Positions 2,686 through 49,263 of a stretch of DNA of 64,000 nucleotides are shown in pieces. The translations under genes and the position numbers were made by a program. The stretch is from positions 2,108,001 through 2,172,000 of the forward strand of contig OZ251230.1 in NCBI GenBank assembly GCA_965240325.2. Direction: 5' to 3'. Position 1 is the stretch's first letter; every line of letters begins with the position of its first letter. This stretch comes from Rebecca billardiae RCC1528. Its lineage: Eukaryota > Protista > Haptophyta. The notes beneath the pieces are model-generated. The model did no database searches, was not told the DNA's origin, and saw only the letters and a program-made list of their open reading frames with translations.

Positions 2686-2832
2686 GCTCTCTCTCTCTCA
2701 GTCTCAGCGATCTCTCTCTCGTCTCTTTCTCTCTCTCTCTCTCCACTCTTCACTCTCTCTCTCGTCTCTATATGATAATAACGGTCGTCGCATATATATA
2801 TACATATATATATGTATATATATATACATACA
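2686..2832. repeat. Degenerate (CT)n followed by (TA)n microsatellite
   Basis: Visible dinucleotide runs. Confidence 0.8.
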
Positions 2833-2919
2833 TAGAAATAAAGAAATATAAAAGAAATAATAGCGCGCGAGCTTATACGCCTACGGCGGAGGCGGAGCTG
2901 GCGCCATCGCTGCCTGCTG

Positions 2920-5900
2920 CTAGTCCTCGTCGGGGCTCGAAGCCGCTGACGAGTGCGCCCCGACGAGCGCGTCGGGGACAGGCGCCGGCGCCGCGGCAGC
3001 TGGCGCTGCCCGGGGCGAGGTAGCGCTTGGCGAAGCCGCCCCCCCCTGGGCCTGTGCCTGAGGCTGCACCATGCCGGCCGCCGGAGCTGCGGACGCGGGT
3101 GCCTCGCCGTCGGCTACCGTTGCGTGCGCCGGTGCGAGCATCAGCGCCGCCGCCGACTGGCTGCCGTTGCGCTCCAGCAAGGCTCGCTCAGCTGAGAGCG
3201 ACGCGCCCGACGCCAGCGAGCGCTCGCTCCCCGCGCGGGAGACGGCGGCCACCGCCTCCGCGGGCGGGCTGCGCCAGTGGGCGGCTTCGGCCGGGAGCTC
3301 CGCCGGCGCCGGGGCTGCGGCCACGACAGCGGCTGCGGGCGGCGGCGTTGCTGGCGCTGGCGGCGGCGCGCTCTCACGCGGCGTGGGTGCGCGTGAGTCG
3401 TGGGCTGGGGACTGCGTGCCTTCCGACGTCGGGGCGGGCGGGTGGCCCGCCGTCGCCCCAGCCGGTGCATGCAGGGCTGTCGCCGCACTCGTTGGGCCTG
3501 CGGAAGCCGCGTCCGTCGCGTCGGCCCGCGCGGCCGAAGCAGCCAGCGGTGCGCGCTCAGCGCTGCGCCGCTCCTCGCGCGCACCCGCCGGCGCGCACGC
3601 GGCCGTGCGGCCGTGCGAGGGCGGGGTGGCCGAGGCCAACGAGCCCTCCGACGGCGCGCGCCCCACCGGCCGGTCGAGCGCCTCGCCGCCGTCGCGCGGC
3701 GCGGCCCACGCGCCGCCCGTGTGCGCGAGGCTGAGCGCCGCGTGCACCGCCTGCGCGGCGCGCGCCTCCTCGCGCGCCTGCCTCAGCTGCACCTCGCGCG
3801 AGCGCAGCAGCCCGCGCAGCAGGCCCTCGCGCGCGAGCGCGTCAAGGGAGGCGGCGTCGGCGCCGGCGGCGGGGAGCAGCGCGCTGCCGGCGAGGCCGGG
3901 CGCGCTGCGCGGCGGCAGGCTCGACGCGTCGGCCGCCCCGCCGCCGCCTGTGAGCACGGCTGCGCGCGCGCGCCGGGCCGAGGCGTGTGGCGCGCGCGTG
4001 AGGACTGCTGCGCGCGCGCGCACGGCTGCGCGCGCGAGCGCGCGCGCGCGCTCACCCTCGAGGTAGGCGCTGAAGTCGCGCTCGGCGCGCAGCTCGTCTG
4101 CGAGCGCCTGGTTGGAGACGCGCAGCCGCTCGCTCGCCTCCGCCGTGCCCTGCGCGGCGCGGTGTGGCGGCGGCGCGCGTCAGTCGGCGCGCGCGCGCGC
4201 GCGGCGCAGCAGGCGGGCTCGCGCGGCCGCCGCGCGTCCTTGGCGCGCACCTGCGCGCGCAGCTCCTCGAGCTCGTCGCGCAGCCCCCGCAGCCGCGCGC
4301 CAAAGTCTGCGGCCGGGCCGGCGGGTCCGCCCGCGCTGCCGGCGACCGCGCTGATCGCGTCGGCGCGCGCGCGCTCGGCGCCGAGCGCACGGTGCGCGGC
4401 GCCGAGCTGTGCGCGCGCCTCCGCCAGCTCGGCCTCCTTGGAGACGAGCACGCCGCCGAGGAAGTCGGCGGCCGCGCGCCTGTCCTCCTCCTCGCCCGCC
4501 GATGCGCCCGCCGCGCTGTGCCGCGCGACGCGGCGCAGCGCGGCCGCGAGCTGCTCCCTCAGAGACGCCAGCTCGGCGGCGGCCGCGGCGCGCTCGGCGG
4601 CCGCCGCCTGCTCGGCAGCGTCGAGCTGCGCGCGCAGGACGGCTGCCTCCTCGCGCAGCGCGCTCCACGCGCGCTCCGAGCGGTGCGCGCCGGCGCGCGC
4701 GCCGGCGAGCTCCTCGCGAAGCGCGTGCAACTCGGCGGCGTGCGACGCGGCCACGCGCTGCGCGGCGGCCGCGCCCTCGGCACCCGCCACGCCCGCGCGC
4801 AGCGCTCGCTGCAGCCCGGCCGCCTCCGCCTCGCACACGCACAGCGCGCGCCGCGCCGCCGCGGCCTCGGCCTCGGCGGCGGCGAGCGCGCGCGGGCAGC
4901 GCTCCGCCGCGCGCCGCCCGAGCTCGTGCTCCGCGCGCGCGAGCAGCGCCCTCAGCTCCGCGTTGTGCCCGTGCAGCCCGCGCACCAGCTCGGCGAGAGC
5001 GGCCTCGCGCGACGCGGCGTCGGCCGTGTCGCCGCGCGGGAGCGGCGGGCCCGCGCCGCCGTCGGCGCCGAGCAGCTGCAGCAGCTCGAGGCAGCGCGCA
5101 GACGTGCCGTGCAGCCGCGCCGCGCTCGCCTCCTCCGCGTACCGCGCGTCCGCCCACGCGGCCGCGCCGTCGGGCGGCGCGGCCGTGGCCTCGAGCGCGG
5201 CCGCGCTCGCGCGGCGCAGCGCGCCGTCGTCGGCGGTGCCGCGCGCGCCGAGGGAGCGCAGCAGCGCGCGCTCGAGCGCGGCGAGATTCGCCTCGGCGGC
5301 GCGCAGCACGCCACCCACGCCCGCGGCCGGCGCGCGCGGCGCGTGCGCCCACGTGGCGAAGCCGCCCGGCGCGGCCGGCGCCAGCCCTTCGGCCGCTTCG
5401 AGCGGCGTGGCGGCTGGCGCGTCGGCGGCCGGCCGCGAGCGCGGCTCAGGCGCTGCGAGGCTGGGCGGCGGCTCGGGGCTGTCCGGCCGGCCCGCGCCGT
5501 GCTCGGCCGTCTCGAGCGCCGCGCGCAGCTCAGGCGCGCTGCGCGCCGCCGCCGCCGAGCGCACGCCGTCCTCGTCGTCGGGCACGCCCGCCCAGGCGGC
5601 GCGCCGCGGCGCCGACTCGGCGGCAGCGGCGGCGCGGTGCGCTCGGATCTCGAGCGCGCTGCTGCTGCGCGCGCGGCCGAGCGCGCTCGCCTGGGTGCTC
5701 GCGCGGCGGCTGGGCGCGGCCGACGCCGGCCGGCCAAGCCCGCTCGCCTGGGTACTCGCCCGCCGGCTGGGCGAGCCCGCCGGCTGCCGCGCGCGCGTCG
5801 AGCCCGCCGGCGGGCGCTCGGGCGCGCGCGGCGGCGGGTGCGCGTCCGGCTCGGCGCCGCGCTCGCCCTCGGACGGGTCGAAGACGAGGCGGGCGGGGGC

Positions 5901-6590
5901 GGGCGGGTGGGGCTCGCGCGGCGCGAGGGCGGGCGGCGGCGAGCGCATCCGGACGGGGCTCGAGCTGCCCCGCCGCGAGCGCGCGCCGCGCGCCGCCGCG
6001 CCGTTGGCGTGCGGGTTGAAGCGCAGCAGCTGCTCGGAGGTCGGCCCGAAGAAGCCCGCATTCGGCTTGCCCGCGTGCGGCAGCTCGGGCGGCGGCTTGG
6101 TGGGCGAGACGTTCTCGGACATGGCCGCGCCCTCGTGCGAGAAGATCCAGCCGTTCCCGTCCGGGGCGGGGCTGTGCAGGCCCGCCGCATGCGTCGGCTT
6201 GCGAGGCTCGGCCGCGGCGTCGGCCGCGTGCGGCGCGTCGTCGGCCGGCGGCGGCTCCTCGCGCGAGTGCATGAGGACCCACGTCGACTTGTCGAAGCCG
6301 AAGCGCAGGCGGTCGCCGTGCGAGAGCCGCTCCTCGCGGCCGTGCACGCGCAGCTCGTTCAGGAAGCAGCCGTTGCGCGAGTTGACGTCGCGCAGCGTCG
6401 CGCCGCCCTCGGCCGTGCCGCTCACGCGGATCTGCGCGTGCGCGCCCGAGACGGAGCGGTCCTCGAGGACGAGGCGGTTGCGCGCGGGGTCGCGGCCGAT
6501 CGTGTACAGCTGGCCGAGCTCGAGCGCGACGACGCGCTGCCGATTGCGCAGGAACGCCCACGGTGGCGCCGCCGCCTCCTCGGCGGGCAT
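2920..6590 (-). CDS. N-terminal FHA domain plus long coiled-coil protein; exons 6590-4251, 4149-4056, 3947-2920
   Basis: FHA motifs TIGRD, SVSGAHAQI, DVNSRNGCFLN, LSHGDRLRFG, then Ala/Glu/Arg heptad-rich helices. GT-AG introns 4250-4150 and 4055-3948 join the three reading frames. Confidence 0.75.
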
Positions 6591-11377: not shown

Positions 11378-14300
11378 ATGAGCGACCAGCGTGCCGCTCG
11401 AGCCACGAGTCGCGACGACGTGGGCGCCGGGGTGGAGGTTCCGTTGCGCGCGGAAAGCAGCGAGCCCAGTGAGGCGCAACATCCAGGCCCGAACGACGAG
11501 CCGCTGCATCCCGTACCCCCGCCCGCTGGCGAGCTGCGCGCGAGCCGCCGCAAGGTGCACCTGCTCCCACGATGCGCACAGTGCAACTCGATGCACTTTG
11601 TGCACGCGGAGACCGGACTGTGCGCCCACTGCGACACGATACGCCTCAAGCGTGATGGCACGATGACGACGGCTACATCCACGGTCAATGTGGACGCAGC
11701 AAGGGCAGCCTCCGCTGAGGAGAGCAACCATACACCTGCTGCTAGCGCCGGCGGCGGAGGAGAAGGAGGCGGCGGCGGCGCGGCGGCCGGAGCGGCTGGT
11801 GCGGACAAGGAGGAGGGCAGCCTCGTACCGGGCACGGCCGCGATCGCGCCGCCCGACGAGCGCAGGCACAGCTTTGGCTGGCTGTTTGACTGCGTGTGCG
11901 GCGTGTCCTTCAGCCAGCGCGACCGATACCAGGGCGCCTGGAAGTCGATGCATCACCTTGCAGCATCACTCGCGCAGGAGCCCGACACGGGCGTGCCCGG
12001 CGGCGAGGGCGAGCGCGAACGCTGGCTCGCGCACTGCGAGCGCTGCGACGCGTGCCTTCATGCATGCTGCGATCTGGAGTACAACCCGACGATGACGGTG
12101 ACGCTGTGCGCGCACTGCTCACCCGAGCCGCCCGCTCAGCGCAAAGCGCCGCTCCTCACGAGGCCAGCGCCGCCGGCCGACACAACCGGCTCCTTGTGTG
12201 GCGGCGCCTGCGTCATCTGCAGAGCGCCCGGGGCCTTCGGAACGCGATCGTGCCTTTTTCGGCCTGACGGCGCGTACGTGCAGCAGCAGGTGCTCGTTGC
12301 GCGCTCGCGAGCCGCGCCGCTTCGCACGGCGGCCGACGTCCGCGCCGCGGTGAGTGGCATGGCCGCGATCGGCACCGCACCAAGCGACGACAACAACAAC
12401 AACAGCAGGACCAAGGCCGAGCGCGTATACATGCGGCTTGCACGTGGGGGAACCGCAGCGCTGCGCGGCGTCGTGCACGCCGTGCGCGGCACGAGGGGCG
12501 GGTTGAGCGCACGCGTCCATCTCGACAACGGCCTTCTCGTCTGGCTCGACGAGCCTGAGCTGCTCGCATGCATGTTCCCCACCAGCGGCGGGTACTCGTT
12601 TGGCGATGCGCCTTCCAAGCAGAAGTGCCGGCTGCCCGCAAAGCAGGCGGCAGAACTGAGCGAGAGCAGGGCATCCTGGCTCGGCGTGCTCTTCAAGAGC
12701 TTCGCCACGGGCGGCACGGGCGACGCGCGGCTGCGCGTGAGCCCGGTCACCAAGCCCGTCTTCTCGACGCCCGGCGTGCTGGAGAACGTGCAGCAGCTCG
12801 GCGTATTTGCGGTCGCAGACGAGCCAGCAGCAGCAGCCGTCGGCGCTACTGAGGATGAGCAGAGCGCGCACGCGCGTCGCTCGATCGCCGGGGATGACGG
12901 GGCGATCGGCGCCGAGGAGAGCATGCGTGCGCACCCGTCGTACCACGACCCGGATGCGAAAGCGATGCCTCTCCAGCGCGGGGATGTGATCGAGGCCTGT
13001 GATCGCGATGGCGAGTGGTACACGGCTTGTGTCATCGGCGTCGCGGGCGGGCGGGCCCTCATCCACTTCTTCGGGTGGGACAAAATGTGCGCGCGCGCAT
13101 GCACCGTGCCATCGTAGGCTCGCGCGGCGTGCTCGGCGTGCCACGGTTGATGCCGTGCCCGCACTCGCTCCGCCCTTTTGATCGCCACGCCGGGCGCGCC
13201 CGACTTAATTCGCCGCGCGGCGCTCGCTCAGGTACGACGAATGGCATGTGATAGGTGGACCCTCGATGCGCCCCGATGCCGGCTTGAACCGTTACGGGCC
13301 GTGCAACGGGCCCGAGGAGCACCGCGCGCACGTGCACGCAGCTCGCGACCGCGTGCGCCCGCGCGTCGCATGCCCGTGGTACGTCGGGCAGCGCGTCCAG
13401 TCAAAAGACTTCTGCGGGCAGTGGTACGCGGCCCGCATCGCCGCAATCGACCACGACCAGATCCTCTTGTGAGCGCGCACGCGCGAGCTGCGCCGGCGCG
13501 CGCCATGATGCGAGCGCGTTGTGCGTCGCGCGTCATGCTTGCGGCGTCGCGACGCGCCCTGCGGCTGACGATCCGCCATCTCACGCGCGCCGGTGATTTA
13601 CCATCATCAATCAACAGGCATTACGAGGGGTGGTCGGACGAGTGCGCGCCGCGCGCGCCGACGTGGTGGCCGCGAATCAGGCCGTGTTTCCGGTTAGAAT
13701 GCGCGCCGTGCGTACTGCGGCTCATGCATACCGCCTCCCGCGCGCGCGCCGTCGCCTGCAGATTCGACGAGTGGAAGCGAAGTAACACGAGCTCGGTCCG
13801 CAAGCTGAAAGGCGCCCCGCGCTTCGGGCCGGCCGGCAGCGAAGCGAACGCGGCCTGGTGGCAGAAGAAGGACGACGGGAGCGTCCCGTACGCGTCGCAC
13901 ACCCCAGCTGAGCGCGAGCCCGAGGCGCGCAGGCTCTCCTCGTCATCGCGCGCGCAGCAGCAGCAGGACAACTCGCGCGCGAGCTCGGAGTGCGATGACC
14001 AGCATCATGCCCCAGCATTCCAGCGCGGCGAGCTCGTCGGAATGTACGGGGGCGCGGTACGCCTGCGCTCGTCTATCGAAGGGGGCAGCGGCGAGCCGCT
14101 CATCAATCCGTGCTACATCTTCGACATCACATCGGACCTGTGCGTCGATGGAGCAGATGGTGGCAATCTGACCAGATACATGTGCGTGCTGTCCCGCCTG
14201 CGCGCGCGCGTGCGCGCTCCTCCAAGCGAGCTGAGCTGCGCGTGCTTGCGATGGGCGCCAGCGTGCCGGCCTGACGCTCGCGCGCCCGTGGCCTGCCTCC

Positions 14301-16403
14301 CCGTCGCGCCACCACAGGAACCACGCCAACACCGAGGCCGAAGCGAACGTCGAGCCCGTCTGCGTCGAGTGGTGCGGCGAGGCGATCATCCTGTTCAGAA
14401 CCACGCGACACATTCTGCACGGCGAGGAGCTCTGCTACCGCTATGCCGACTTCTCCTTCCTCGACGAGACGCACCTGCAGCACTCGCACGGCTCCAAGGC
14501 GCCGGCGCGAGAGCACGTCCACCACGTGCGCATGGCCATGCGCGACGTGCACTTGCAGCACCTCGACTGGCTCAAGTGCACCGGCGACCGCGACGGCTTT
14601 CGGGTGCTCTTCAACCTGGTCGCACCCATCGTCGACGACGCGGTTGCCGAGTCACCGGTGCCATACGCCTGTGCACCTCAAGCACTGATCGTCGAGCCAG
14701 CCGGCGCCGCTCGTGAACGCGCTCAGACGCCGCCCGCCGATCGCGCACCCATCACCAACGGCGACCAGCAGCCGAGTGAGCCGTCCCCAGCACAGCCGCA
14801 CAGCGTGCGCCCTGCAGAGGGCTCTCGCGCTGTGTCGCAGCAGCTGTCCAAGTTCGCGAGCATGCCCAGTCTGAGTGCCGCTGTCGCCGCGGCGCCGGAC
14901 AGGCGCACCGCGGCGAAGGTTGGTGCCGTGCTCGACGATCTCGTGCGCCGCGTGGATCTCGTCACAGGGCGAGTGCCGCCTTCCCATCGGCTGCCACCAC
15001 GAGCACCTGCGCACCCACTACTCACCAAGCGGAGCAGCGCACCCGACCAGCCCGCTCGTTTGCCGCGTCGGGGCGACTCTGCGGACGCCCCGCCGCCCGC
15101 GAAGCAAGCCAAGCACGCTATCGCATCCGCACCGCGCGCAGTGCGCGATTGCGTCAATCACCTCGTGCGCGCCGCGGTCAACGCTGAGGCGGCCATGCAG
15201 GACAAGATACTGTACGTGGACGAAGCGATGAGCAATCTCGAGGGCGCAATCTTGATGCGCTATGAGCAAGAAGCCTCGGACCTCGCGGGTTTCATCGAAG
15301 ACGCCTTCTTTACCGTCGAGTCGCTCTGCCTGCAGCCCGCGAACAAGGTGGAAGTACGATCGAGGTGGAGCAGCTGGCTCGAGCGTCGGCTCGTGCTGCT
15401 GCGCGCGCGCGTCGACTCTACGCTGAGCACCCTCGCGGAGACTCAGGCTGCATGGCAAGCCGTCGCGCGGAGGCGGCCAGGCGAGGTTCCTGGGCCGCTC
15501 GAGCTGCCTGAGCTTGCTCGGCGGATGGCGGCGTGGCGCGTGGGATGGGACGGTCGCATGAGCGAGTACGCGCTCGCACACGATAGGTACCTGCGATGCA
15601 TGCGCGAGCATCTCGAGAGCTGGACTTCGGCGCAGCACAGCCAGCGCGCGGCGACGACAGGCGCGCGTGCGCAGGTGAAGGAGTGCCTGGACTTCGTGGT
15701 GTCCGCCGTCGAGCACCTCGTGACAGCGGACGCGATACAGATCGGCGCACCGGCGGCGACGGCGCTCGCACCGCGGGTGCTGCCGCCCAACATGGACGCA
15801 CAGCAACAGCAGCCTCTCATCCCGACGCAAGCCACGGCGCAGACGCCCTCCGCCGCGGAGCTTCTCCGAGAGCTGGCCCACACAAATCAGCAGCTCGTGC
15901 TGCAGCTCCAACTGCAGGAGGCTCGACTGCAGTCGCACCTCTGCTCGGCGGCAGTGGCAGCAGGGCCGTCGTTGAGCGCGCTTGCACAGATGATGCTGCA
16001 TGCACAGCAGCTCCAGGTGGGGCATCAGCTGGGGATGCAGATGCAGGCAGCAGCCTGTGCACAGCCCGTCCATCCCGTGCACCCGGGACTCTTCGGCAGC
16101 GCCTTTCGCCTGCCGCATGCGCCAGCAGACCATTCAACCCCGCCCATTTCCGCGCAGCCGCGTGCTCTGCTGGGTGCGCAGGCGCAGGCTGCGCAGCCCA
16201 TGCTGCGCGCAGCTCACCATCACCTCATCGCCGGCAGTGCGCCGGCACCGCTGTCAGCCGCTGCCAGCGGCTCAGTCGACGCTCACGCTGCCGTCGATGC
16301 GCATGGTTGGGCGAGTGACAGTGCAGGGCAAGCGTCGCCGCCGCCGCTACTGGCGCCGCTGCCATTGCTCCCGGGGGGCCGGGTCTATTCTCGTCGTTGG
16401 TAG
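11378..16403 (+). CDS. PHD + tandem Tudor/Agenet-like + SET domain chromatin protein (~1491 aa); exons 11378-13086, 13232-13468, 13618-13641, 13762-14181, 14318-16403
   Basis: PHD-type C4HC3 (CVC...CERCDACLHACC...CAHC). Two Tudor-like repeats (GDVIEACD..GEWY..HFFGWDKMYDEW and GQRVQSKD..GQWY..HYEGWSDEFDEW). SET motifs LGVFA, GELVGMYGG, YIFD, GNLTRYMNHA, GEELCYRY. Four phase-2 GT-AG introns keep the frame. Confidence 0.82.
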
Positions 16404-18588: not shown

Positions 18589-19611
18589 TCAATCGAGCAA
18601 GCCGCCGCCGCCGCCGCCGCCCGCTGGTCGATGGGCTCGGCCGCCTTGACGGCCAAAGCCAAGCCCGCCGAGTCGCAAGCCGCCTCCACCCCTGACGAAC
18701 TCCCAGATGGCCCAGCGCACGTCCTCCCATGCGCCGATCGCGTGGAGGCGGTGGACAACGATGGCGACGAAGAGTGGGATGGCGCACACCAAGAGGCGAC
18801 GGTGGCGCAAGCGCCACCGTTGCGCTGCACGCCAGCTGGCGGCGACTGCGAATGGCAGCACCAGCAGCAGCTGGTCGATGGCGATCGCCCTGCGGCCATG
18901 GTCGAGATTTCGGAGCGCGTCGTGCAGCATGGAGCGTGCCCCGCACGCCTCCAGCGCGGCGCCGAGTCCGTGCGTCGGGGATCTCGCCACCTGCCAGTCG
19001 AGCAGCAGCGGGCGCTCGGCGCGCACAAAGGGCAGGTCGTCGGGGATGCCGCCGCTCGGGTCAGGCAGCCGGATCACAAAATGATCGGCGTCCTCGACGA
19101 TCAGCGAGCACGGCCCCCACCGAGGGGTGAATGCCCCAGCAAACTCTGAGTACTGCACCGCACAGCTATCTTCAGAAGCCTCCCAGGTCGTGCGGCCGGA
19201 CTTAACGAACGCATTGCCCGTGAGCTTGACGGCGACGAGCCGTGTTCCGTCTGAGCTGCGCGCAGCCTTGGACGTGCTGTCGACGCGGACCTCGACGAGC
19301 TCGAGCCCGCCGTACGGGTAGAGCGCGAGCCACGTGCCCTGCAATGTGAGCAGCGAAGAGGTGCTGCCGCGTGGCCTCGTGACCTGCGGCCTCGAGATGT
19401 GGGCGTAACAACGCTCGGAGACGAACGCGTGCACGGCCTCCGCACAAGCACGCGGGCATTCTCGCGCATCTGCCGACTCCGCGCACTCACGCGTCACGCG
19501 AGTCACCGCAGGGCCTTCGAGCAGACGCAGGACCTCCGCATGCGTGCACGCGTCCCCGCCCCAAAACCCGGCGATCGCCGGGAGCAGCCACGCTGCAGCG
19601 ATCGTCGCCAT
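18589..19611 (-). CDS. Signal-peptide protein with DUF3506/cyclin D1-binding (EXECUTER/FBXO31-type) domain and C-terminal hydrophobic segments
   Basis: Hydrophobic N-terminus MATIAAAWLLPAIAG. LQGTWLALYPYGGLELVEV...LVAVKLTGNAFVKSGRTTWEA matches the GxWxxxYxxxGxE / AVKLTGDxxVPxG pattern. Confidence 0.6.
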   Translation of the reverse strand: MATIAAAWLLPAIAGFWGGDACTHAEVLRLLEGPAVTRVTRECAESADARECPRACAEAVHAFVSERCYAHISRPQVTRPRGSTSSLLTLQGTWLALYPYGGLELVEVRVDSTSKAARSSDGTRLVAVKLTGNAFVKSGRTTWEASEDSCAVQYSEFAGAFTPRWGPCSLIVEDADHFVIRLPDPSGGIPDDLPFVRAERPLLLDWQVARSPTHGLGAALEACGARSMLHDALRNLDHGRRAIAIDQLLLVLPFAVAASWRAAQRWRLRHRRLLVCAIPLFVAIVVHRLHAIGAWEDVRWAIWEFVRGGGGLRLGGLGFGRQGGRAHRPAGGGGGGGLLD

Positions 19612-19691
19612 CGTTTCTAGCTCCAAGCTCGGGAGCCGGGAAGGAACAAAGCCCTCCTCGTTATTCGTTGGCAGCGGTGGTGACGTGCACA

Positions 19692-21638
19692 ATGGCGGCG
19701 TCGGAAAGCGACGCGTGCGGGGTGGAGACGGGCTGGTGGAGGCATCCGACGCGCGTGCTCGAGGTTGTGCGCGCGCTGCTGGACCTCCTGTGGCTTCTCG
19801 TGTGCATTCGGCTGAAGAGCACGAGCGTGCGCACCGGCAGCTGGAGCGCCGTCGACTTCTTTGCCGAGCGCACGCAGCAGACGCCCGACGCGCACGCGCT
19901 CGTCAGCACTGCGTCCGGCGAGGTTCTCACGTTTCGCGGCCTGGACGAGCTGTCCAATCAGATGGCGCACTGGCTCATGAGCCGAGGCGTCCGGGCGGGC
20001 GACGTGGTCGTGCTCGCCCTCGCGGCGTGCCCATCCTACGTCGCGCTCTGGCTGGGCGTGGCCAAGGCTGGCGCGACGGCCGCGCTCGTGAACGTGCAGC
20101 TGCGCGGCGCGTCCCTGGCCCACGCGGTGCGCACGGCCCTCAGCACGACGCCCGTCGCGCGCCACATCGTCGTCTGCGACGGCAGCGCGCATGCCGAGCT
20201 CGTGCTCGCCGACGCCCTCGGCGAGAGCGTCACGGTCGCCGTGTGCGGTGCCGCCGCTCCGGGCTCGGCAGCGGTGCGGGCGGCGGCGCTCGCGCTCGAG
20301 CGCGAGCTCGACGCGCGGCCGCGCTCCGCCGTGGACGGCGCCGCGCGCGAGGGTGTGCGGTGGAGCAGCCCGCTGTGCCTCATCTACACCTCCGGCACAA
20401 CGGGTCTGCCCAAGGCGAGCCGCTTCAACCACCTGCGCTTCTGGATGGCGGGCAAGGCGATGCACGTGCTGTGCCGGCTGCGCGCGGCCGACCGCATCTA
20501 CTGCGCGCTGCCGCTGCACCACGCGTCGGGCGGGATGATGGGCGTGAGCGCCGCGGTGCACGCAGGCTGCGCGCTCCTCGTGCCCCCGCGCTTCTCTGCG
20601 CGCGCCTTCCGCGCCGACTGCGCCGCGCACGGCGCGAGTGTCGTGCAGTACATCGGCGAGATGGCGCGGTACATCGTCGCGGCGCACGGCCCGGCCGAGC
20701 CGCGGCAGCGCAGCACGGACGAGCCGCCGCTGCGCCTGCGCGTCGCCTTCGGCAACGGGCTGCGCCCCGAGGTGTGGCGGCCGTTCCAACGCGCGCTCGG
20801 CATCCGCCGCGTCGTCGAGTTCTACGCCTCGACCGAGGGCAACGTGAACCTCTTCAACAACACGGGCGTGGTGGGCGCGGTGGGCGTGGTGCCGTGCTTT
20901 GCCGCTCGGCTCTACCCGCTCGTGCTCGCGCGCGTGGCGCGCGGCGGCGGGGACGGCCTCGTGCTCGAGCGCGACGGGTCGACCGGGCGGTGCGTGCCCT
21001 GCGCGCCGGGCGAGCCGGGGCAGCTCCTCGGCCTGATCAGCGAGCACGACCCGACGCGCCGCTTCGACGGGTACACGGACACGGACGCGAGCGCGTCCAA
21101 GGTGGTGGACGGCGTGGCCGCGCCCGGCGACCGCTACTTTGCGAGCGGCGACCTGCTGTGGCGCGACTGGTTCGGCTTCTACTACTGGAGCGACCGCGCG
21201 GGCGACACGTACCGCTGGAAGGGCGAGAACGTGAGCACTGCGCAGGTCGCCACCGTCCTCACCGCCGACGGCTCGGGCGTGCTCGACGCGTGCGTGTACG
21301 GCGTGCGCGTGCCGCACTGCGACGGGCGCGCGGGCATGGCGGCGCTCCTGCTGCGCGAGACCGGCGCCGGGCTCGACGCGGCCGAGCTGTACCGTCGGTG
21401 CGCGTCGCAGCTCCCGTCCTTCGCGCTGCCGCTCTTCGTGCGGCTCGTGCGCTCGGCCGAGACCCTGCGCGTCACCGCCACCTTCAAGCACCAGAAGGCC
21501 GAGCTGCAGCGCGACGGCTTCGACCCGCAGGCCGTGGGCGACGACGCGCTCTTCATGCGCGACGACAAGCGGCGGACGTACGTGCCGCTGAGCGCGGAGC
21601 ACGTGCGCGACATCGAGTGCGGCGCGATGCGGCTGTAG
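19692..21638 (+). CDS. SLC27A: Long-chain fatty acid transport protein / very-long-chain acyl-CoA synthetase (FATP/SLC27 family)
   Basis: AMP-binding IYTSGTTGLPKA, QYIGEMARY, GNGLRP, EFYASTEGN, FATP signature DRAGDTYRWKGENVST, TATFKHQK. Confidence 0.93.
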   Translation: MAASESDACGVETGWWRHPTRVLEVVRALLDLLWLLVCIRLKSTSVRTGSWSAVDFFAERTQQTPDAHALVSTASGEVLTFRGLDELSNQMAHWLMSRGVRAGDVVVLALAACPSYVALWLGVAKAGATAALVNVQLRGASLAHAVRTALSTTPVARHIVVCDGSAHAELVLADALGESVTVAVCGAAAPGSAAVRAAALALERELDARPRSAVDGAAREGVRWSSPLCLIYTSGTTGLPKASRFNHLRFWMAGKAMHVLCRLRAADRIYCALPLHHASGGMMGVSAAVHAGCALLVPPRFSARAFRADCAAHGASVVQYIGEMARYIVAAHGPAEPRQRSTDEPPLRLRVAFGNGLRPEVWRPFQRALGIRRVVEFYASTEGNVNLFNNTGVVGAVGVVPCFAARLYPLVLARVARGGGDGLVLERDGSTGRCVPCAPGEPGQLLGLISEHDPTRRFDGYTDTDASASKVVDGVAAPGDRYFASGDLLWRDWFGFYYWSDRAGDTYRWKGENVSTAQVATVLTADGSGVLDACVYGVRVPHCDGRAGMAALLLRETGAGLDAAELYRRCASQLPSFALPLFVRLVRSAETLRVTATFKHQKAELQRDGFDPQAVGDDALFMRDDKRRTYVPLSAEHVRDIECGAMRL

Positions 21639-36010: not shown

Positions 36011-36313
36011 GTTGCGGCTTCGGACCGAACATTGATATTAGTTCATAGTTGATGTCACTCCGGCCTAAGTACTCGGAGTACTGTTCGAACCGTTAATACT
36101 TATATATATATACTTATATGATGTATATATATCTAGATAGATAGATAGATAGAACTCTGCCAGGTGCTGTCACCGGTGTACATCACTCGCGCCGAGATAG
36201 CAGCCTACTAGCACTTAGCAGTGCGATATGCGTTACCGCGCGTAAGCGTTACATCGGTCGATCGTGTGTAATTGTATATTGGAACAAGTGCGTGCGGAGC
36301 CCGGTGGCAGGCC

Positions 36314-38192
36314 TCATCCCCAGTCCCCGCGCGCTGCTGCGATGGGACTCTCTTGGCTGCCGCCGTCGGCTGCAGCACAGCGCGCGCGCTTCACCGGCGT
36401 GTTGCCGATTGGGCTGGCGCACTTGCGCGACTTGGCGAAGCTGTTGAGCGCCTCCATGGCCACCCCGAGCTTGCTCGCGTCGCGCACAAACACGCGCACC
36501 TTCTTGTCCTGGAAGTGGCGCGGCAGCATCGAGGACACGTTGCGCAGCGGGTCGAGTGGCTGCGCGACAACGGAGTCGAGGTGCTCGAAGAACTCGACGT
36601 TGCGCACCGGGTCCTTGGACTGCGAGCGCAGCCGCGCCGCGCGCGCGCGAGCGAGAGCGGTGTGTGAGTGGGGCAGGGCGGCGCGCACGCGGGGCGATGC
36701 GGCCACCCCCGCGCGCACCTTCATGGAGTAGTTGATCTCCTTGTTGTCGACGATCACGTCCTCCTCGCGCAGGCCGGAGCCCAAGGGCGCGAGGTCGACA
36801 ATGTCGCGCGCCGTGACGCGCGACCAGCTGGGGTGCATGTGGTCGGGCACGTTGGCCTCGCCCGCGTACTTGTACAGGTCGCGCACGCTGCACGCGCCGC
36901 GCCAACGCGCCCGCCCGCACGCGCGCAGGCGCGTGAGCGCGCGCGGCGCGCGGCGCGCGGCTTGCGCAGGAGGGCGCGCGCGCGGTCCGGGCCGCGCACC
37001 GGAGGCGGCGCACGATGGCGCGAGCAGCCTCGAGCTCAGGCTCGGCCGACCACTCGATGCGCTTCAGGATCGTGTCGTCCAGCGTCTTGAACGTGCGCGG
37101 CTCCCAGATGAGCTCCTGGAACCTGAAGTGCGCGTCCGCGGCGACGAGCGCGTCCGTGACCATGTACTCGATCGCCTTGGCCTTGGCGTGCGTGTACACG
37201 ACCTGGTGCATGTTGGCGCGCGTGTGGAAGAGGTTGTACAGCGTGTTCACCTCGCTCGTCTTGAAGCACACGCGCCCGTTGATCACCTTGCTCAGCTGGA
37301 TCAGCCGCGAGTGGTCGAAAGACGTGCGCACGTTGCACGCCGCGCCGTCGCGGAGCAGGTAGTCGAACTTGTCGATGTCCACCGAGTTCCGCCCGTTCGC
37401 CACGATCTCGTAGAGGAACATCTTGCCGCCGAGCGAGAGCTGCGGCCGCTTCGAGTGCGCGCCCGTGTACTGCCCCGACGAGTCGTAGTCCTTCTTGTCG
37501 ATCGAGATGAGCTCCTTCACGGCGCGCAGGTCGTCGCGCTGCAGCCCGTCGCGCGTGTCCACGCCGATCGTGTCCTCCATGTCGTTCACGTCGTACAGGT
37601 GCTGCAGCATCTCGCACGACATGGCCTCGTGCGACCACTCGCGGTGCGCGTCGATGCGGCCCAGCTCGCGCAGCCGCGGCAGCACCTCGTTGTCAAAGAG
37701 GTGCGAGAAGGGGCCGTGGCCGAGGTCGTGGCAGAGCCCGGCGATGGCCACGAGCTTCACCTCCTTGTTCGTCACGCCCAAGTCGGGCTGACACAGCTGG
37801 AAGTGCTGCGCCCACCGCTCGGCCAGGTGGTAGGTGCCGAGCGAGTGCTCAAAGCGCGTGTGCGACGCGGCGGGGTACACGTACGAGGAGAGACCGAGCT
37901 GCTTGAGCTCACGGAGCCGCTGGAACTCTGGCGTGTCGATTATTGCGACCGCGTCGGGCGCGATCCGGAACAACCCGTGGATCGCGTCGTTCACCAGCTT
38001 GCCATGCTTCCGCGTGCTGCGCGCGGCTGGAACCATGTGCTCGAGCTGCGCGGTGGTGTTGTCCAACTGCACGTGCGAGCTCCCGTCGCGCTGGTGCATG
38101 ACGAACGCATCCGGATGCTTATTCACTTGCGCCTGCTGCGAGAAGGGCAACGGCTCATCGTCGTCGCTCTCTTCCGCGACAGCGGGCAGCAT
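36314..38192 (-). CDS. SAMHD1: HD-domain dNTP triphosphohydrolase, SAMHD1-like; exons 38192-37000, 36887-36719, 36619-36314
   Basis: NDAIHG, IIDTPEFQRLRELKQLG, HTRFEHSLG, GLCHDLGHGPFSH, DIDKFDYLLRD, RDLYK; GT-AG introns 36999-36888 and 36718-36620. Confidence 0.92.
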
Positions 38193-46579: not shown

Positions 46580-48304
46580 TCAGCCGCTGCTGTTGATCTC
46601 TCCCATGCGGCGAGTGTAAGGCGCGAAGAGCAGAGACGTGGCGATGCCGACAGTCGCGCAGCAGCTCGCGACAGCGAAGACGCGCCGGAAGCACTGCGGC
46701 CCAACGCAGTCATCGGAGCCCTCCTCGGTCACGGCCTCGTAGAGCAGAGCGCCTGTCGAATTGTACGCTAGCCCAGCCATGCCAGCCGTGACCGCAATCA
46801 GCCCGAACATCGTGCCGAAGTTCTCGATCGGGTAGTTCTCCGCAAGGATGGCCTGCGCTGCGACCCATGTCGTGCCGTAGGCCATCGACGAGACGAGCAC
46901 GAGCGTGTACACGGGCCACAGCTTCGGCTCGCCGTCTAGCCCACGAAGGCCGTACGTGGCTGAGGCGCAGGCGTACACAAGCGCAAAGAGGAGCAGCGCA
47001 TACGTCAGCCAGTGGCCGCGGCGAGCGAGCGGAAACTTGTTGCTGAGCAGTCCGAAGATGAAGCGGCCGCCGGCGTTCCCGATCGGGAAGAGCGACGTGA
47101 CGATCGACGCTTCCGTCACCGTGCCACCCGCGCTGGCCACAAACGCGCTCGTCGAGTTGATCACGAAGAGGCCTGAGCCGAACGCGACAAAGAGCGTGAG
47201 CTCGAGCAGCCAGAAGTCCGCGTGCATGCACACGTTCGCGAGGTGTGCGAGGGATGTCAGCTCATCGCGCAGTGCCACGGCGATCGGCACGTCGTGCTCG
47301 TCGTCATCGTGCTCCGCCTGTGCGTCCACAAAGTGCGTGTGCGAATCATCCGCCGCCTCCACGCTCGCGCCTGCCTCGGGAGCCGCTCCGGCGGCCGGCA
47401 GACCTCGAGCAAACGAGCTGGTCTGGCTGCCTTCACGCGAGTGGCTCCGCGAAGGCGTAAGGGACGCCTGCGGCGTGTGTTCGAGCGGCGAGGCCACGTC
47501 CTCAAAGTGCTCGCGGTGATAGTCCTCGATGAGGTGGCCGGGGTGTGGGTTTCCACCCGCGCGCGACATGAGGACCATGCCGCCGGTCCCCACGACGACC
47601 ATCCCGATGACCGCCCACGTGAAGAAGAAGTGGCTCAACACGCGGCCATCGTGCGACAACCCCGGGTACGTAGACGCGACGAGCAGCGAGCTCAGGCCGA
47701 AGCAGGTCGAGTGCGCGGCGATCACGCGTGCGCGGTTGACGAGCTTAGAGCGCTTCACGTTGGTGCCAAACGCACCGACGTTGATGAACGAGGCGGCCAT
47801 CCCTGTCACAAAGAAGCACACGGCGAGTATCGCCTCCGACGAGGTGTTCGAATCGGACCCCGCGTCGCGCAGACGGTTGTGCCCCTCCACGTGCAACATG
47901 GTCACTGCGACGGCACCGTTGCCCACGGCGACGAAGATTGTTGCCATGATGATTGTCAGCGGTGTGCCGAACGTGTCAAAGAAGGTGCCGGAGACCGGCT
48001 GCGCAAGGTACAGGCCAAAGTCATACGCGACGCCAAGAAGAGCCATTCTCGTCTGCGACAGGCCAAGCGTGTGCTTCAGGTCCTCCGCATACACACCAAA
48101 CGCGTACGGCGCGCCCGCGATCAGTGACATGCACATGCCCGCAAGCAACCCGATGAGCGGCACGCCCTGGATGTTGTGCTCGTGGTGATGCGCGTGCTCG
48201 GCGCCTGGTTCGACGCCGTTATCGCTTGGGCGCTCATGCCGTGGACGCAGGGCCGCACGGTCGTCCTCGGCGGCGGGCGCCGCAGCGCCTTCCGCCGTGG
48301 CCAT
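46580..48304 (-). CDS. MFS transporter, nodulin-like/NFD4/Mch1 type
   Basis: About 12 hydrophobic segments in two halves with a central loop; GAPYAFGVY..DLK..LGLSQT, ADFWLL, GNAGGRFIFGLLS, FGTMFG, CVGPQCFR. Confidence 0.88.
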   Translation of the reverse strand: MATAEGAAAPAAEDDRAALRPRHERPSDNGVEPGAEHAHHHEHNIQGVPLIGLLAGMCMSLIAGAPYAFGVYAEDLKHTLGLSQTRMALLGVAYDFGLYLAQPVSGTFFDTFGTPLTIIMATIFVAVGNGAVAVTMLHVEGHNRLRDAGSDSNTSSEAILAVCFFVTGMAASFINVGAFGTNVKRSKLVNRARVIAAHSTCFGLSSLLVASTYPGLSHDGRVLSHFFFTWAVIGMVVVGTGGMVLMSRAGGNPHPGHLIEDYHREHFEDVASPLEHTPQASLTPSRSHSREGSQTSSFARGLPAAGAAPEAGASVEAADDSHTHFVDAQAEHDDDEHDVPIAVALRDELTSLAHLANVCMHADFWLLELTLFVAFGSGLFVINSTSAFVASAGGTVTEASIVTSLFPIGNAGGRFIFGLLSNKFPLARRGHWLTYALLLFALVYACASATYGLRGLDGEPKLWPVYTLVLVSSMAYGTTWVAAQAILAENYPIENFGTMFGLIAVTAGMAGLAYNSTGALLYEAVTEEGSDDCVGPQCFRRVFAVASCCATVGIATSLLFAPYTRRMGEINSSG

Positions 48305-49263
48305 GCCTGCTGTCGGGTTTTCGGCGGCAAGGAGCCTCGCGCGGTCGCGCCTCCGCCGTCCTCGTGCTTGAGTCTGAACCGTCGAACCGACTTCGAACTC
48401 ACCCGCACGGGCACGGCCGCCACCGGCGACGAGGCCGCGCGCGGCTCGCGCCGCGCACGTTGCCCGGCGTCGTTGCCAGGCTCGTTGGCCCCGGCCCGGC
48501 GGCACGCAGCTTCTAATTGTAGATAGTCTGCTCGTACAACTTATAATAGCTCTGCGCTTGATCACTGATGCTGCATCAGAGCTGGTCACCGTCACCGATT
48601 TCATCGGCCGAGAATGAGCAACTCACTCATCAGACTCATCAGCAAAGGGCGCCGTACGGACTACGCCGTCGGAGTACGCGGGCAGCAGTCACCGGGCTGG
48701 CGCCACCGCGCCATGCGGCTGATGCGGCAGCCGGCATGCCGCGGGCCGGGCCCGGGAGTGCCACTGAGACCATCACGGACATTACGCGGTCCGACCCGGG
48801 TCGGACGGTTAAGTGGCCGGATCAGCGGCGGCATAAATCGCGGCGGTCATAGTAATTAGTATATATCATCAGTATACTTCCGAGTAGACCGACCGTTGGT
48901 GACTCACTGTCGTAGTGCCAAGTCACTGCACCTAAGTCGGCTCCGGGAGTCGGAGTCGGAGACTGGAGAGCGCCCGCGTGATATTAGACGCGCGCGGTCC
49001 AACCACTCCTGACTCCAACCTGAACTCCGCTCACCGCTGTCACGGATTGATTGGTTGCAGCCAGCTGCCGGGTATCCGACCTGAAGGATCTCAAGACGTC
49101 GAAGCCCCTCACTCACCACAGCGACTTGACTGCTGCGCGTGTCCGAACGGAAGACGGGAAGTGAACCACGCCATCTCCGCCGTTGCTTCCGAGACGCGCG
49201 CGCGCTCAAGGCCCTCGTCCTCACTCGTCCTCAATCAGCCTCGAGGGGGCCTCGGCCGAGGTG

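Follow-up and report, generated by a model that had tools for sequence, protein, structure and literature searches.

The locus holds one predicted gene on the forward strand of the 64,000-nt window, the whole stretch of DNA that was analysed, within which all coordinates are given. Removal of four introns in silico from 11378-16403 yields a single open reading frame encoding a protein of 1491 aa. The features, all on the + strand, are as follows.

11378-16403, + strand: whole gene; five exons, stop included in exon 5, 1491-aa product
11378-13086, 13232-13468, 13618-13641, 13762-14181 and 14318-16403, + strand: exons 1 to 5 of the splice model
11891-12121, + strand: PHD-like C4HC3 zinc-finger pattern with a long first loop, aa 172-248, from its ligand pattern
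12194-12565, + strand: family-specific module, a Cys cluster with CL(F/W)RPDG(A/D)Y and then ARVH(L/F)DNGxxVWL, from similarity to P0006 and collinearity with the homologue L001/P0010 (see below)
12731-12820, + strand: putative N-terminal SET strands (SET-N), strand 1 LRVSPV at 12731-12748 and strand 2 LGVFAVAD at 12797-12820, from the canonical SET profile
12821-14017, + strand: insert, aa 482-742, 261 aa between LGVFAVAD and FQRGELV; the span includes introns 1-3
12956-13274, + strand: Royal-family reader unit 1, aa 527-584, from a profile match; interrupted by intron 1 after GWDKM
13087-13231, + strand: intron 1, 145 nt, phase 2, GTGCGC..CAG
13356-13816, + strand: Royal-family reader unit 2, aa 612-675, from a profile match; split by introns 2 and 3 and holding a 24-nt micro-exon
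13469-13617, + strand: intron 2, 149 nt, GTGAGC..CAG
13642-13761, + strand: intron 3, 120 nt, phase 2, in frame and without a stop
14018-14444, + strand: SET core and SET-C, aa 743-839, with FQRGELVGMYGG, DITSDLCVDG, NLTRYM/NHA and GEELCYRY, from profiles; split by intron 4
14182-14317, + strand: intron 4, 136 nt, GTGCGT..CAG, between RYM and NHA

The initial annotation had placed both halves of a SET domain and the readers in a single gene, and the in silico splicing agrees, since they fall in one frame once the four introns, all GT..AG and 120-149 nt long, are taken out. At each of the four junctions conserved motifs are rejoined without a gap (GWDKM/YDEW, ILL/HYEGWSDE/FDEW and RYM/NHA, the slash marking the junction), exon 3 (13618-13641) being the 24-nt micro-exon. 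Introns 1 and 3 occupy an identical position and phase within their respective reader units. All five exons have a GC3 of 0.77-0.86. The source genome is that of a GC-rich alga.

The SET domain and its N-terminal strands

The first SET strands had been annotated at about 12730-12820, some 260 aa ahead of the next SET motif, and both the position and the separation are borne out by the features listed above. The strands were placed with a canonical SET profile, built independently from SET domains of bacteria and archaea (81 in all). With the insert deleted, QQLGVFAVAD joined to FQRGELVGMYGG aligns gap-free to the profile's ihGrGvfAtrrIkkgtriieyvG, and the insert-deleted protein gives a one-piece alignment running from the GrGvfA positions through ELtYdY. 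Against this profile the score is 27.5 bits without the 41 aa that end in the SET-N strands and 36.6 bits with them. The junction comes first among the 702 control junctions (median 26.8 bits) and lies about 10 standard deviations above their mean. A (G)xG-hydrophobic-F-A motif is then found directly before hxxGE with its first Gly replaced, the degenerate GxG reading QLG, and there are 14 extra residues between strands 1 and 2. The SET-N pattern, which was defined post hoc, occurs once per homologue and in 0.01% of shuffles. Two other candidates were rejected. With AVGATEDE as the GxG strand the alternative junction scores 26.8 bits, with no gain, and the linker immediately 5' of FQRGELV, where a local SET-N might lie, is polar and of low complexity, without a strand-like segment. 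The assignment of LRVSPV...LGVFAVAD as the first SET strands, split from the SET core by 261 aa, is thus supported in silico.

The core itself follows at once, with FQRGELVGMYGG at 14018-14053, NLTRYM/NHA at 14165-14327, spanning intron 4, and GEELCYRY at 14421-14444. The canonical SET profile gives it 27-36 bits, and it keeps YGG (as MYGG), NH (in RYMNHA) and EELCYRY at the corresponding profile positions. A joint profile with the homologue L001 finds the MLL1 SET domain in the PDB at an E-value of 1.4e-6, the profile matches comprising MLL1, LegAS4, ATXR5, EZH2, G9a and SET8, and exons 4 and 5 match adjacent parts of the uninterrupted SET domain of L001 (pairwise E 2e-12 and 0.002). Run on separate exon pieces, the Pfam SET entry (PF00856) reaches at best 16.1 bits, short of its cut-off of 22.4, the exon-5 piece having an E-value of 0.016. 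RYMNHA and GEELCYRY are intact in the spliced frame and aligned to the SET profile, as originally noted; equally, direct reading of the spliced translation reveals no CxCx4C post-SET 3' of the domain. After the NH pair, the SCxPN stretch is replaced by a segment 7 aa longer. Known active enzymes that lack a zinc post-SET include SET7/9, SET8 and ATXR5/6. On its retained motifs, the domain is probably an active lysine methyltransferase.

The insert and its reader units

The insert consists of a 45-aa linker, reader unit 1, a 27-aa spacer, reader unit 2 and a 67-aa linker, the 45-aa and 67-aa linkers being of low complexity. Against a profile built from 16 related repeats, the two units, each of about 60 aa, score 57.7 and 48.4 bits, and the alignment is gap-free over three splice junctions, one in unit 1 and two in unit 2. 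The same profile matches L3MBTL3 (E 1e-22), PHF20L1 (2e-13) and the SETDB1 Tudor (about 1e-5) in the PDB, as well as SFMBT, SCML2 and EAF3/MRG15, while the exon-1 part of unit 1 alone finds the PHF20 Tudor and L3MBTL1 at E-values of 0.0024 and 0.03. The nearest solved relatives of both units are the PHF20 Tudor and the L3MBTL MBT domains; in Pfam, relatives of the units match MBT, Tudor-knot, MSL3_chromo-like and Agenet. Unit 1 reads ACD...HFFGWDKMYDEW and unit 2 SKD...HYEGWSDEFDEW, and both match the repeats of L3MBTL3 in register at an Asp and at the F/Y, W and Y/F positions. These conserved positions we take to be the methyl-lysine cage, from the known structure of L3MBTL1. In related domains, the Asp and three aromatics form a cage preferring mono- or dimethyl-lysine.

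The initial description of two Tudor/Agenet-like repeats with cage residues therefore stands as regards the two units and their conserved cage positions, but they lie nearer to the PHF20 Tudor/MBT core than to Agenet. Nor do we class them as MBT repeats, because they are about 60 aa long with a 27-aa spacer and their PDB matches cover the barrel core only, the MBT repeat proper having about 100 aa and an N-terminal arm packed against the adjacent repeat. The further statement that the readers are built into the catalytic fold was too strong. The units are topologically nested, but they are flanked by low-complexity linkers, in a loop that measures about 28 aa even in the homologue, and they probably form a separate module that folds and moves on its own.

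N-terminal modules and the homologous gene

The finger near the N-terminus was originally called a PHD finger. The C4HC3 ligand pattern is indeed present, with all eight ligands invariant between the 1491-aa protein and its homologue P0010, but no Pfam entry matches it by exon pieces at E-values up to 1, and a profile search of the PDB gives best matches at 0.2-9 that are not consistently PHD; its identity as a PHD finger is unconfirmed for this reason. Exon 1, searched against 1.84 billion representatives, returned its own ORF, one homologous cluster (P0006/P0010) and otherwise unrelated proteins sharing only the reader repeat, the match of P0006 to the family-specific module having an E-value of 3.4e-5.

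One homologous gene was found, on the metagenome contig L001 (P0010 plus a downstream exon). Its modules follow in the same order, namely C4HC3 finger, Cys cluster, VWL module and homologous SET core, and the spacing from VWL module to SET-N is alike in the two proteins, 55 aa in the 1491-aa protein against 53 in L001. At the insertion site L001 has only about 28 aa, and no reader unit is present anywhere on the contig. Comparison with L001, the one homologue found, shows the insert as a gain relative to it at the sequence level. The uninterrupted SET domain of L001 passes the Pfam cut-off at 28.6 bits and lacks the NH and Tyr residues, so that non-catalytic members of the family would seem to exist; an AlphaFold2 model of it from single-sequence input was poor (pLDDT 40). 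At its N-terminus L001 also carries a chromodomain of HP1 type (Pfam E 6e-11). A corresponding upstream exon was sought here with the L001 N-terminus by tblastn, which found nothing in the window.

Other searches yielded no further relatives. As queries in word-indexed protein searches, exon 4, the L001 SET domain and a four-row alignment gave no match; two metagenome and two viral scans gave no confirmed relative, tblastn of the L001 SET domain against plasmids no match, and an ESM Atlas search with exon 1 no usable match. The best explanation is that the protein belongs to a rare, lineage-specific family whose scaffold comprises the C4HC3 finger, the Cys cluster, the VH(L/F)DNG..VWL module, the SET domain and a long tail.

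Possible function and comparison with known systems

Three other readings of the locus bear on any function. The readers could stand in series with the SET domain, LRVSPV...LGVFAVAD belonging to the upstream module or being a chance match, to give two Tudors followed by a SET domain without canonical N-terminal strands and therefore with an unusual N-lobe or inactive. Taken alone, SET-N is indeed not significantly similar to that of L001 (BLASTP E 14), the canonical SET profile could not place the L001 strand, and MAFFT and phmmer favoured another GxG candidate (GVGAV) in L001; moreover, the first Gly of GxG is missing, and gains of up to 5-7 bits occur in some control windows. However, an alternative of the GVGAV type brings no gain in the 1491-aa protein, the SET-N element keeps the same distance from the module before it in the two proteins, the linker before FQRGELV offers no strand-like segment, and the insert-deletion junction outranks its controls by the wide margin given above. 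We regard the serial arrangement as quite unlikely. Only slightly less probable is a wrong or incomplete gene model, in which the locus forms two transcription units or its main isoform lacks the reader exons. Exons 2 and 3 (261 nt) can be skipped in frame to leave one hybrid reader unit scoring 59 bits, and intron 3 is stop-free and in frame, but the exact spacing of the motifs restored at all four junctions and the uniformly high GC3 argue for the model as drawn. In addition, no alternative start or stop lies between the parts, and even the form skipping exons 2 and 3 still has a reader nested within the SET domain.

Of somewhat greater weight, though still improbable, is that the nesting is real and the enzyme is not: the split SET domain would fold as a binding or scaffold pseudo-enzyme, and the protein would be a multivalent chromatin reader. 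The probably non-catalytic L001 homologue, without NH and the C-terminal Tyr residues, is consistent with this, as are the degenerate GxG, the missing post-SET and the longer segment in place of SCxPN. Against this, the Tyr of YGG, the NH pair and the two tyrosines of ELCYRY have all been retained here, unlike in L001, and SET7/9, SET8 and ATXR5/6 are active although they have no zinc post-SET.

We therefore favour, with somewhat more confidence than doubt, a nuclear chromatin protein in which a SET methyltransferase carries two nested Royal-family readers that would dock it to methyl-lysine. Between strands 2 (GVFAVAD) and 3 (FQRGELV) of SET-N, a surface turn of about 28 aa would have grown to 261 aa, gaining two domains of PHF20-Tudor/MBT type on flexible linkers. 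The reader pair may then dock the enzyme on nucleosomes or proteins already bearing methyl-lysine, which would raise the local concentration of substrate for the SET domain and might result in spreading of its own product or in cross-talk with another mark. From the sequence alone, we infer that the gene would be expressed, that the split SET domain would fold and be catalytic, and that methyl-lysine binding would be coupled to writing. A more far-reaching idea is that the nesting is itself functional: because the two readers are attached at the turn beside the cofactor-binding SET-N strand, engagement of a methylated tail might pull or order that strand and activate the enzyme, a product-stimulated allostery like that of EED/EZH2 in one polypeptide, with skipping of exons 2 and 3 tuning two readers to one. 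This we consider very unlikely.

Interrupted SET domains are known from SMYD and SETDB1, and fusions of writers with readers are common. As in SMYD, where the SET domain still assembles around it, a folded domain would be nested in the N-terminal part of the SET domain, but the SMYD domain is a MYND zinc finger rather than a methyl-lysine reader. MYND enters SMYD after the strand of the xxGE motif, later than the insertion here. SMYD proteins further possess a post-SET and, C-terminally, a TPR-like domain, both absent from the 1491-aa protein, in which no exon matches MYND in Pfam and no Cys cluster lies 3' of the SET domain. SETDB1/ESET likewise combines Tudor-type readers and an interrupted SET domain in one protein. 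Its triple Tudor, however, lies far N-terminal to the SET domain, whereas the readers here lie between SET-N strands 2 and 3; its SET domain is interrupted midway by a long segment that is largely unstructured, and it has the MBD, pre-SET and post-SET that the 1491-aa protein lacks. G9a/GLP, SUV39/Clr4 and PRC2 share the principle proposed here, a methyl-lysine reader coupled to a SET writer, and in them the coupling has been demonstrated experimentally; their readers, whether ankyrin repeats, a chromodomain or the separate subunit EED, are all outside the SET domain. PHF20/PHF20L1 Tudor and L3MBTL MBT domains provide the best matches to the units, with the Asp and three aromatics of HF.GW...YD.W conserved, but belong to stand-alone readers of other complexes, and a true MBT repeat has about 100 aa and an extra arm, against about 60 aa for the units here.

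The initial annotation did not recognise the architecture as a known one, and we likewise found no published description of the layout, nor any report of methyl-lysine readers inside a SET domain; its component domains appear familiar and their arrangement unusual. If expressed and active, the protein would offer a natural test of the size of insertion that the SET-N lobe tolerates, and of whether a reader tethered beside the cofactor pocket alters activity. The single scaffold bearing an N-terminal chromodomain in L001 and nested Tudor-like units here suggests that algae may swap reader modules, in both type and position, on a fixed writer scaffold.

Gene model and surrounding locus

The SET/reader gene lies on the forward strand among unrelated neighbours, as listed below. 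Exon junctions were placed by reading the three forward frames of the window.

Features of the locus (window coordinates; exons are predicted)
48-1562, dihydrouridine synthase
11378-13086, + strand, exon 1 of the SET/reader gene
13232-13468, + strand, exon 2
13618-13641, + strand, exon 3
13762-14181, + strand, exon 4
14318-16403, + strand, exon 5
18592-19692, - strand, Cyclin_D1_bind-like ORF
36252-38192, - strand, HD-domain protein
46583-48604, - strand, MFS/Nodulin-like transporter

The four introns, of 145, 149, 120 and 136 nt respectively, share the 5' end GTG(C/A)G and the 3' end CAG; in the predicted model the five joined exons form a single frame of 1491 codons. GC3 is 0.77-0.86 across all five exons, in a window where GC ranges from 0.54 to 0.84 (2-kb bins). 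Junctions 1, 2 and 3 restore the motifs GWDKM/YDEW and ILL/HYEGWSDE/FDEW (slashes mark the splice points), and a 16-unit repeat profile (see below) spans them without gaps. Junction 4 restores RYM/NHA, and the exon-4 and exon-5 pieces match adjoining residues, 59-112 and 118-151, of the uninterrupted SET domain encoded by metagenome contig Ga0400246_002534, here called L001 (pairwise E 2e-12 and 0.002). Elsewhere in the window, a 2-kb block at 4001-6000 reaches 84% GC; long ORFs of up to 1077 aa overlap there on the two strands, and only two short tandem arrays were detected in it.

A SET domain interrupted between strands 2 and 3

Pfam detects only the last third of the SET domain, in the piece encoded by exon 5 (E 0.016), because intron 4 and the insert interrupt it. 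A profile made from the exon-4 and exon-5 pieces and the L001 SET matches the SET domains of MLL1 (E 1.4e-6), LegAS4, ATXR5, EZH2, G9a and SET8. The core contains the motifs MYGG, RYMNHA and EELCYRY, and no Cys cluster was found before or after the SET domain in the predicted protein. This agrees with the initial annotation, which had described the latter two motifs as intact and a post-SET as lacking; the cluster is in fact absent on either side.

The likeness of the putative N-terminal strands (SET-N, LRVSPV...LGVFAVAD) to those of the homologue is weak (BLASTP E 14), and an independent SET profile test was therefore built. Bacterial and archaeal sequence was screened with a degenerate DNA pattern encoding RF.NHSC.PN, which yielded 120 loci; the 81 SET domains among them that extend 90 residues or more upstream of this motif gave a canonical profile of 181 positions. 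The SET core alone scores 27.5 bits against it, and the core joined to the 41 aa ending at LGVFAVAD scores 36.6 bits, in a one-piece alignment running from ihGrGvfAtrrIkkgtriieyvG (here VQQLGVFAVADFQRGELVGMYGG) through ELtYdY. As a control, all 702 possible upstream 41-aa windows were joined to the core and scored: the true junction ranks first of the 702, with a control median of 26.8 bits (sd 0.97) and 32.6 bits for the top unrelated window. An alternative junction, after AVGATEDE, gave no gain (26.8 bits). A two-strand pattern formulated post hoc has a single match per homologue and is seen in 0.01% of shuffled sequences.

Since the fused SET-N and core align to the canonical profile with this ranking, the insert is placed, from sequence, at the canonical FAxxD to IxxGE transition, which corresponds to the turn joining strand 2 to strand 3. 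The first SET strands had been proposed to be split from the downstream SET motif, and the profile junction upholds this, with 261 aa in between.

Composition of the insert (residues of the predicted protein)
aa 482-526, Ala/Asp/Glu-rich linker, 45 aa
aa 527-584, reader unit 1, 58 aa
aa 585-611, spacer, 27 aa
aa 612-675, reader unit 2, 64 aa
aa 676-742, polar Ser/Gln/Arg-rich linker, 67 aa

A homologue with an uninterrupted SET domain was also found. The representative search gave one homologous cluster, P0006 (E 3.4e-5), whose longer member, P0010 (845 aa), is present on ten metagenome and Logan contigs. On L001, its ORF is followed by one GTGCGC..CAG intron and then by a stop-free stretch (2828-5395) containing a SET domain that exceeds the Pfam cut-off (28.6 bits). 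The two proteins are collinear in the order C4HC3 finger, whose eight ligands are the same in both; Cys cluster with CL(F/W)RPDG(A/D)Y; ARVH(L/F)DNGxxVWL, lying 55 or 53 aa from SET-N; SET-N; E.AAA.VGA stretch; and SET core. They differ in the distance from SET-N to core, which is about 28 aa in L001 but 261 aa here, and in the Tudor-like units, of which the whole L001 contig has none. Conversely, L001 encodes an N-terminal HP1-type chromodomain (Pfam E 6e-11), a domain absent from the gene under study. The Cys cluster, at window 12194-12271, reads CGGACVIC...C (CGVCSGC in the homologue) before CL(F/W)RPDG; it recalls one CGxCxxC element of the CXXC fingers and has no Pfam match.

The L001 SET has neither NH pair nor C-terminal tyrosines, and its sequence suggests that the protein is probably a non-catalytic relative. 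The domain has degenerated so far that the canonical profile does not locate its SET-N strand, and a single-sequence AlphaFold2 model of it was poor (pLDDT 40). Around GN(L/V)TRY(I/M), L001:3110-3200 weakly resembles (E about 1) the Legionella effector LegAS4/RomA (PDB 5czy/8sr6); both lack the usual NHS, and the likeness may be convergent. The tail of the L001 gene (215-5395) terminates in long Ala/Ser repeats.

The reader units

Exon 1 was searched exhaustively against 1.84 billion representatives, which recovered proteins sharing only residues of about 510-568. These bear from two to several units of around 60 aa with the signature WY...HY.GW...WDEW, and their Pfam matches (MBT, Tudor-knot, MSL3 chromo-like, Agenet and SAWADEE) all belong to the Royal superfamily. 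A local profile was built from 16 related repeat units. It detects just two units in the predicted product, at aa 527-584 (57.7 bits) and 612-675 (48.4 bits), and no others in the rest of the window.

PDB matches of the reader-unit profile
L3MBTL3 / L3MBTL1 MBT repeats, three stretches, E 1e-22 to 1e-18
PHF20L1 / PHF20 Tudor, full length, E 2e-13 to 6e-12
SFMBT, SCML2, EAF3/MRG15, FXR, ARID4A and SETDB1 Tudor, E 4e-11 to 5e-5

Even a truncated unit 1 by itself matches PHF20 (E 0.0024) and L3MBTL1 (E about 0.03). The two Tudor-like repeats noted originally in the insert are both recovered by the profile; since they are too short for full MBT repeats, they are classed as PHF20-type Tudor / MBT-core Royal domains. 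In the register of L3MBTL3 HFDGW..YDYW, unit 1 reads HFFGWDKMYDEW and unit 2 HYEGWSDEFDEW, and each retains the first-loop Asp (in ACD and SKD, respectively). Where L3MBTL1 has been solved, the mono-/dimethyl-lysine pocket is formed by an Asp and three aromatics at these positions, and by analogy we infer the same role for them here.

Introns 1 (13087-13231) and 3 (13642-13761) occupy identical positions in the two units, after GWxxx and in phase 2. Skipping exons 2 and 3 (261 nt) preserves the frame and yields one hybrid reader unit scoring 59 bits, so that the predicted gene leaves room for a one-reader isoform. Intron placement and hybrid unit are both consistent with the pair having arisen when a unit that already held an intron was duplicated; the two introns are no more similar in sequence than other intron pairs within the gene. 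Intron 3 is itself stop-free and in frame.

Possible function and relatives

The likeliest reading, which we favour with some reserve, is of a SET methyltransferase that is active and would be tethered, through the two readers nested in it, to substrates already carrying mono- or dimethyl-lysine. Binding of such substrates by the readers would hold the enzyme there, and might lead to spreading of its own mark or to cross-talk with another. The readers, nested in the chain, need not contact the catalytic domain because their linkers are long; to call them ‘built into the catalytic fold’, as was done earlier, thus exceeds the evidence.

A folded but non-catalytic SET is considerably less probable; the probable inactivity of the L001 homologue speaks for it, the motifs kept in the core against it. 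It is unlikely that the readers simply stand in series with a SET lacking its N-terminal strands: the poor direct match of those strands to the homologue speaks for this reading, their behaviour in the profile control against it. An incorrect or incomplete gene model is given a slightly smaller chance again; the predicted model is constrained by homology at all four junctions.

Apart from this putative methyltransferase, no nested example emerged from protein, metagenome and viral searches. Within the literature covered, a full-text search for split SET domains with a Tudor or other reader insertion returned only SETDB1, SMYD-type proteins and general reviews, which is no proof of absence. In the passages available from a survey of eukaryotic chromatin proteins (10.1101/2021.11.30.470311), reader-writer co-occurrence is described, mostly involving PHD, Chromo and Bromo domains, and those passages contain no reader nested in a SET.

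Among proteins from the exon-1 search, P0005 (1738 aa) has, by Pfam, an N6_N4 DNA methylase domain and a PHD-like zf-HC5HC2H finger in addition to several Tudor/MBT-like units; it may thereby link chromatin reading to DNA methylation at adenine or cytosine-N4. Three others (P0002, P0007 and P0008) have two or three copies of the Tudor/Agenet-like unit after a hydrophobic, signal-peptide-like N-terminus, where a fold of chromatin readers is unexpected.
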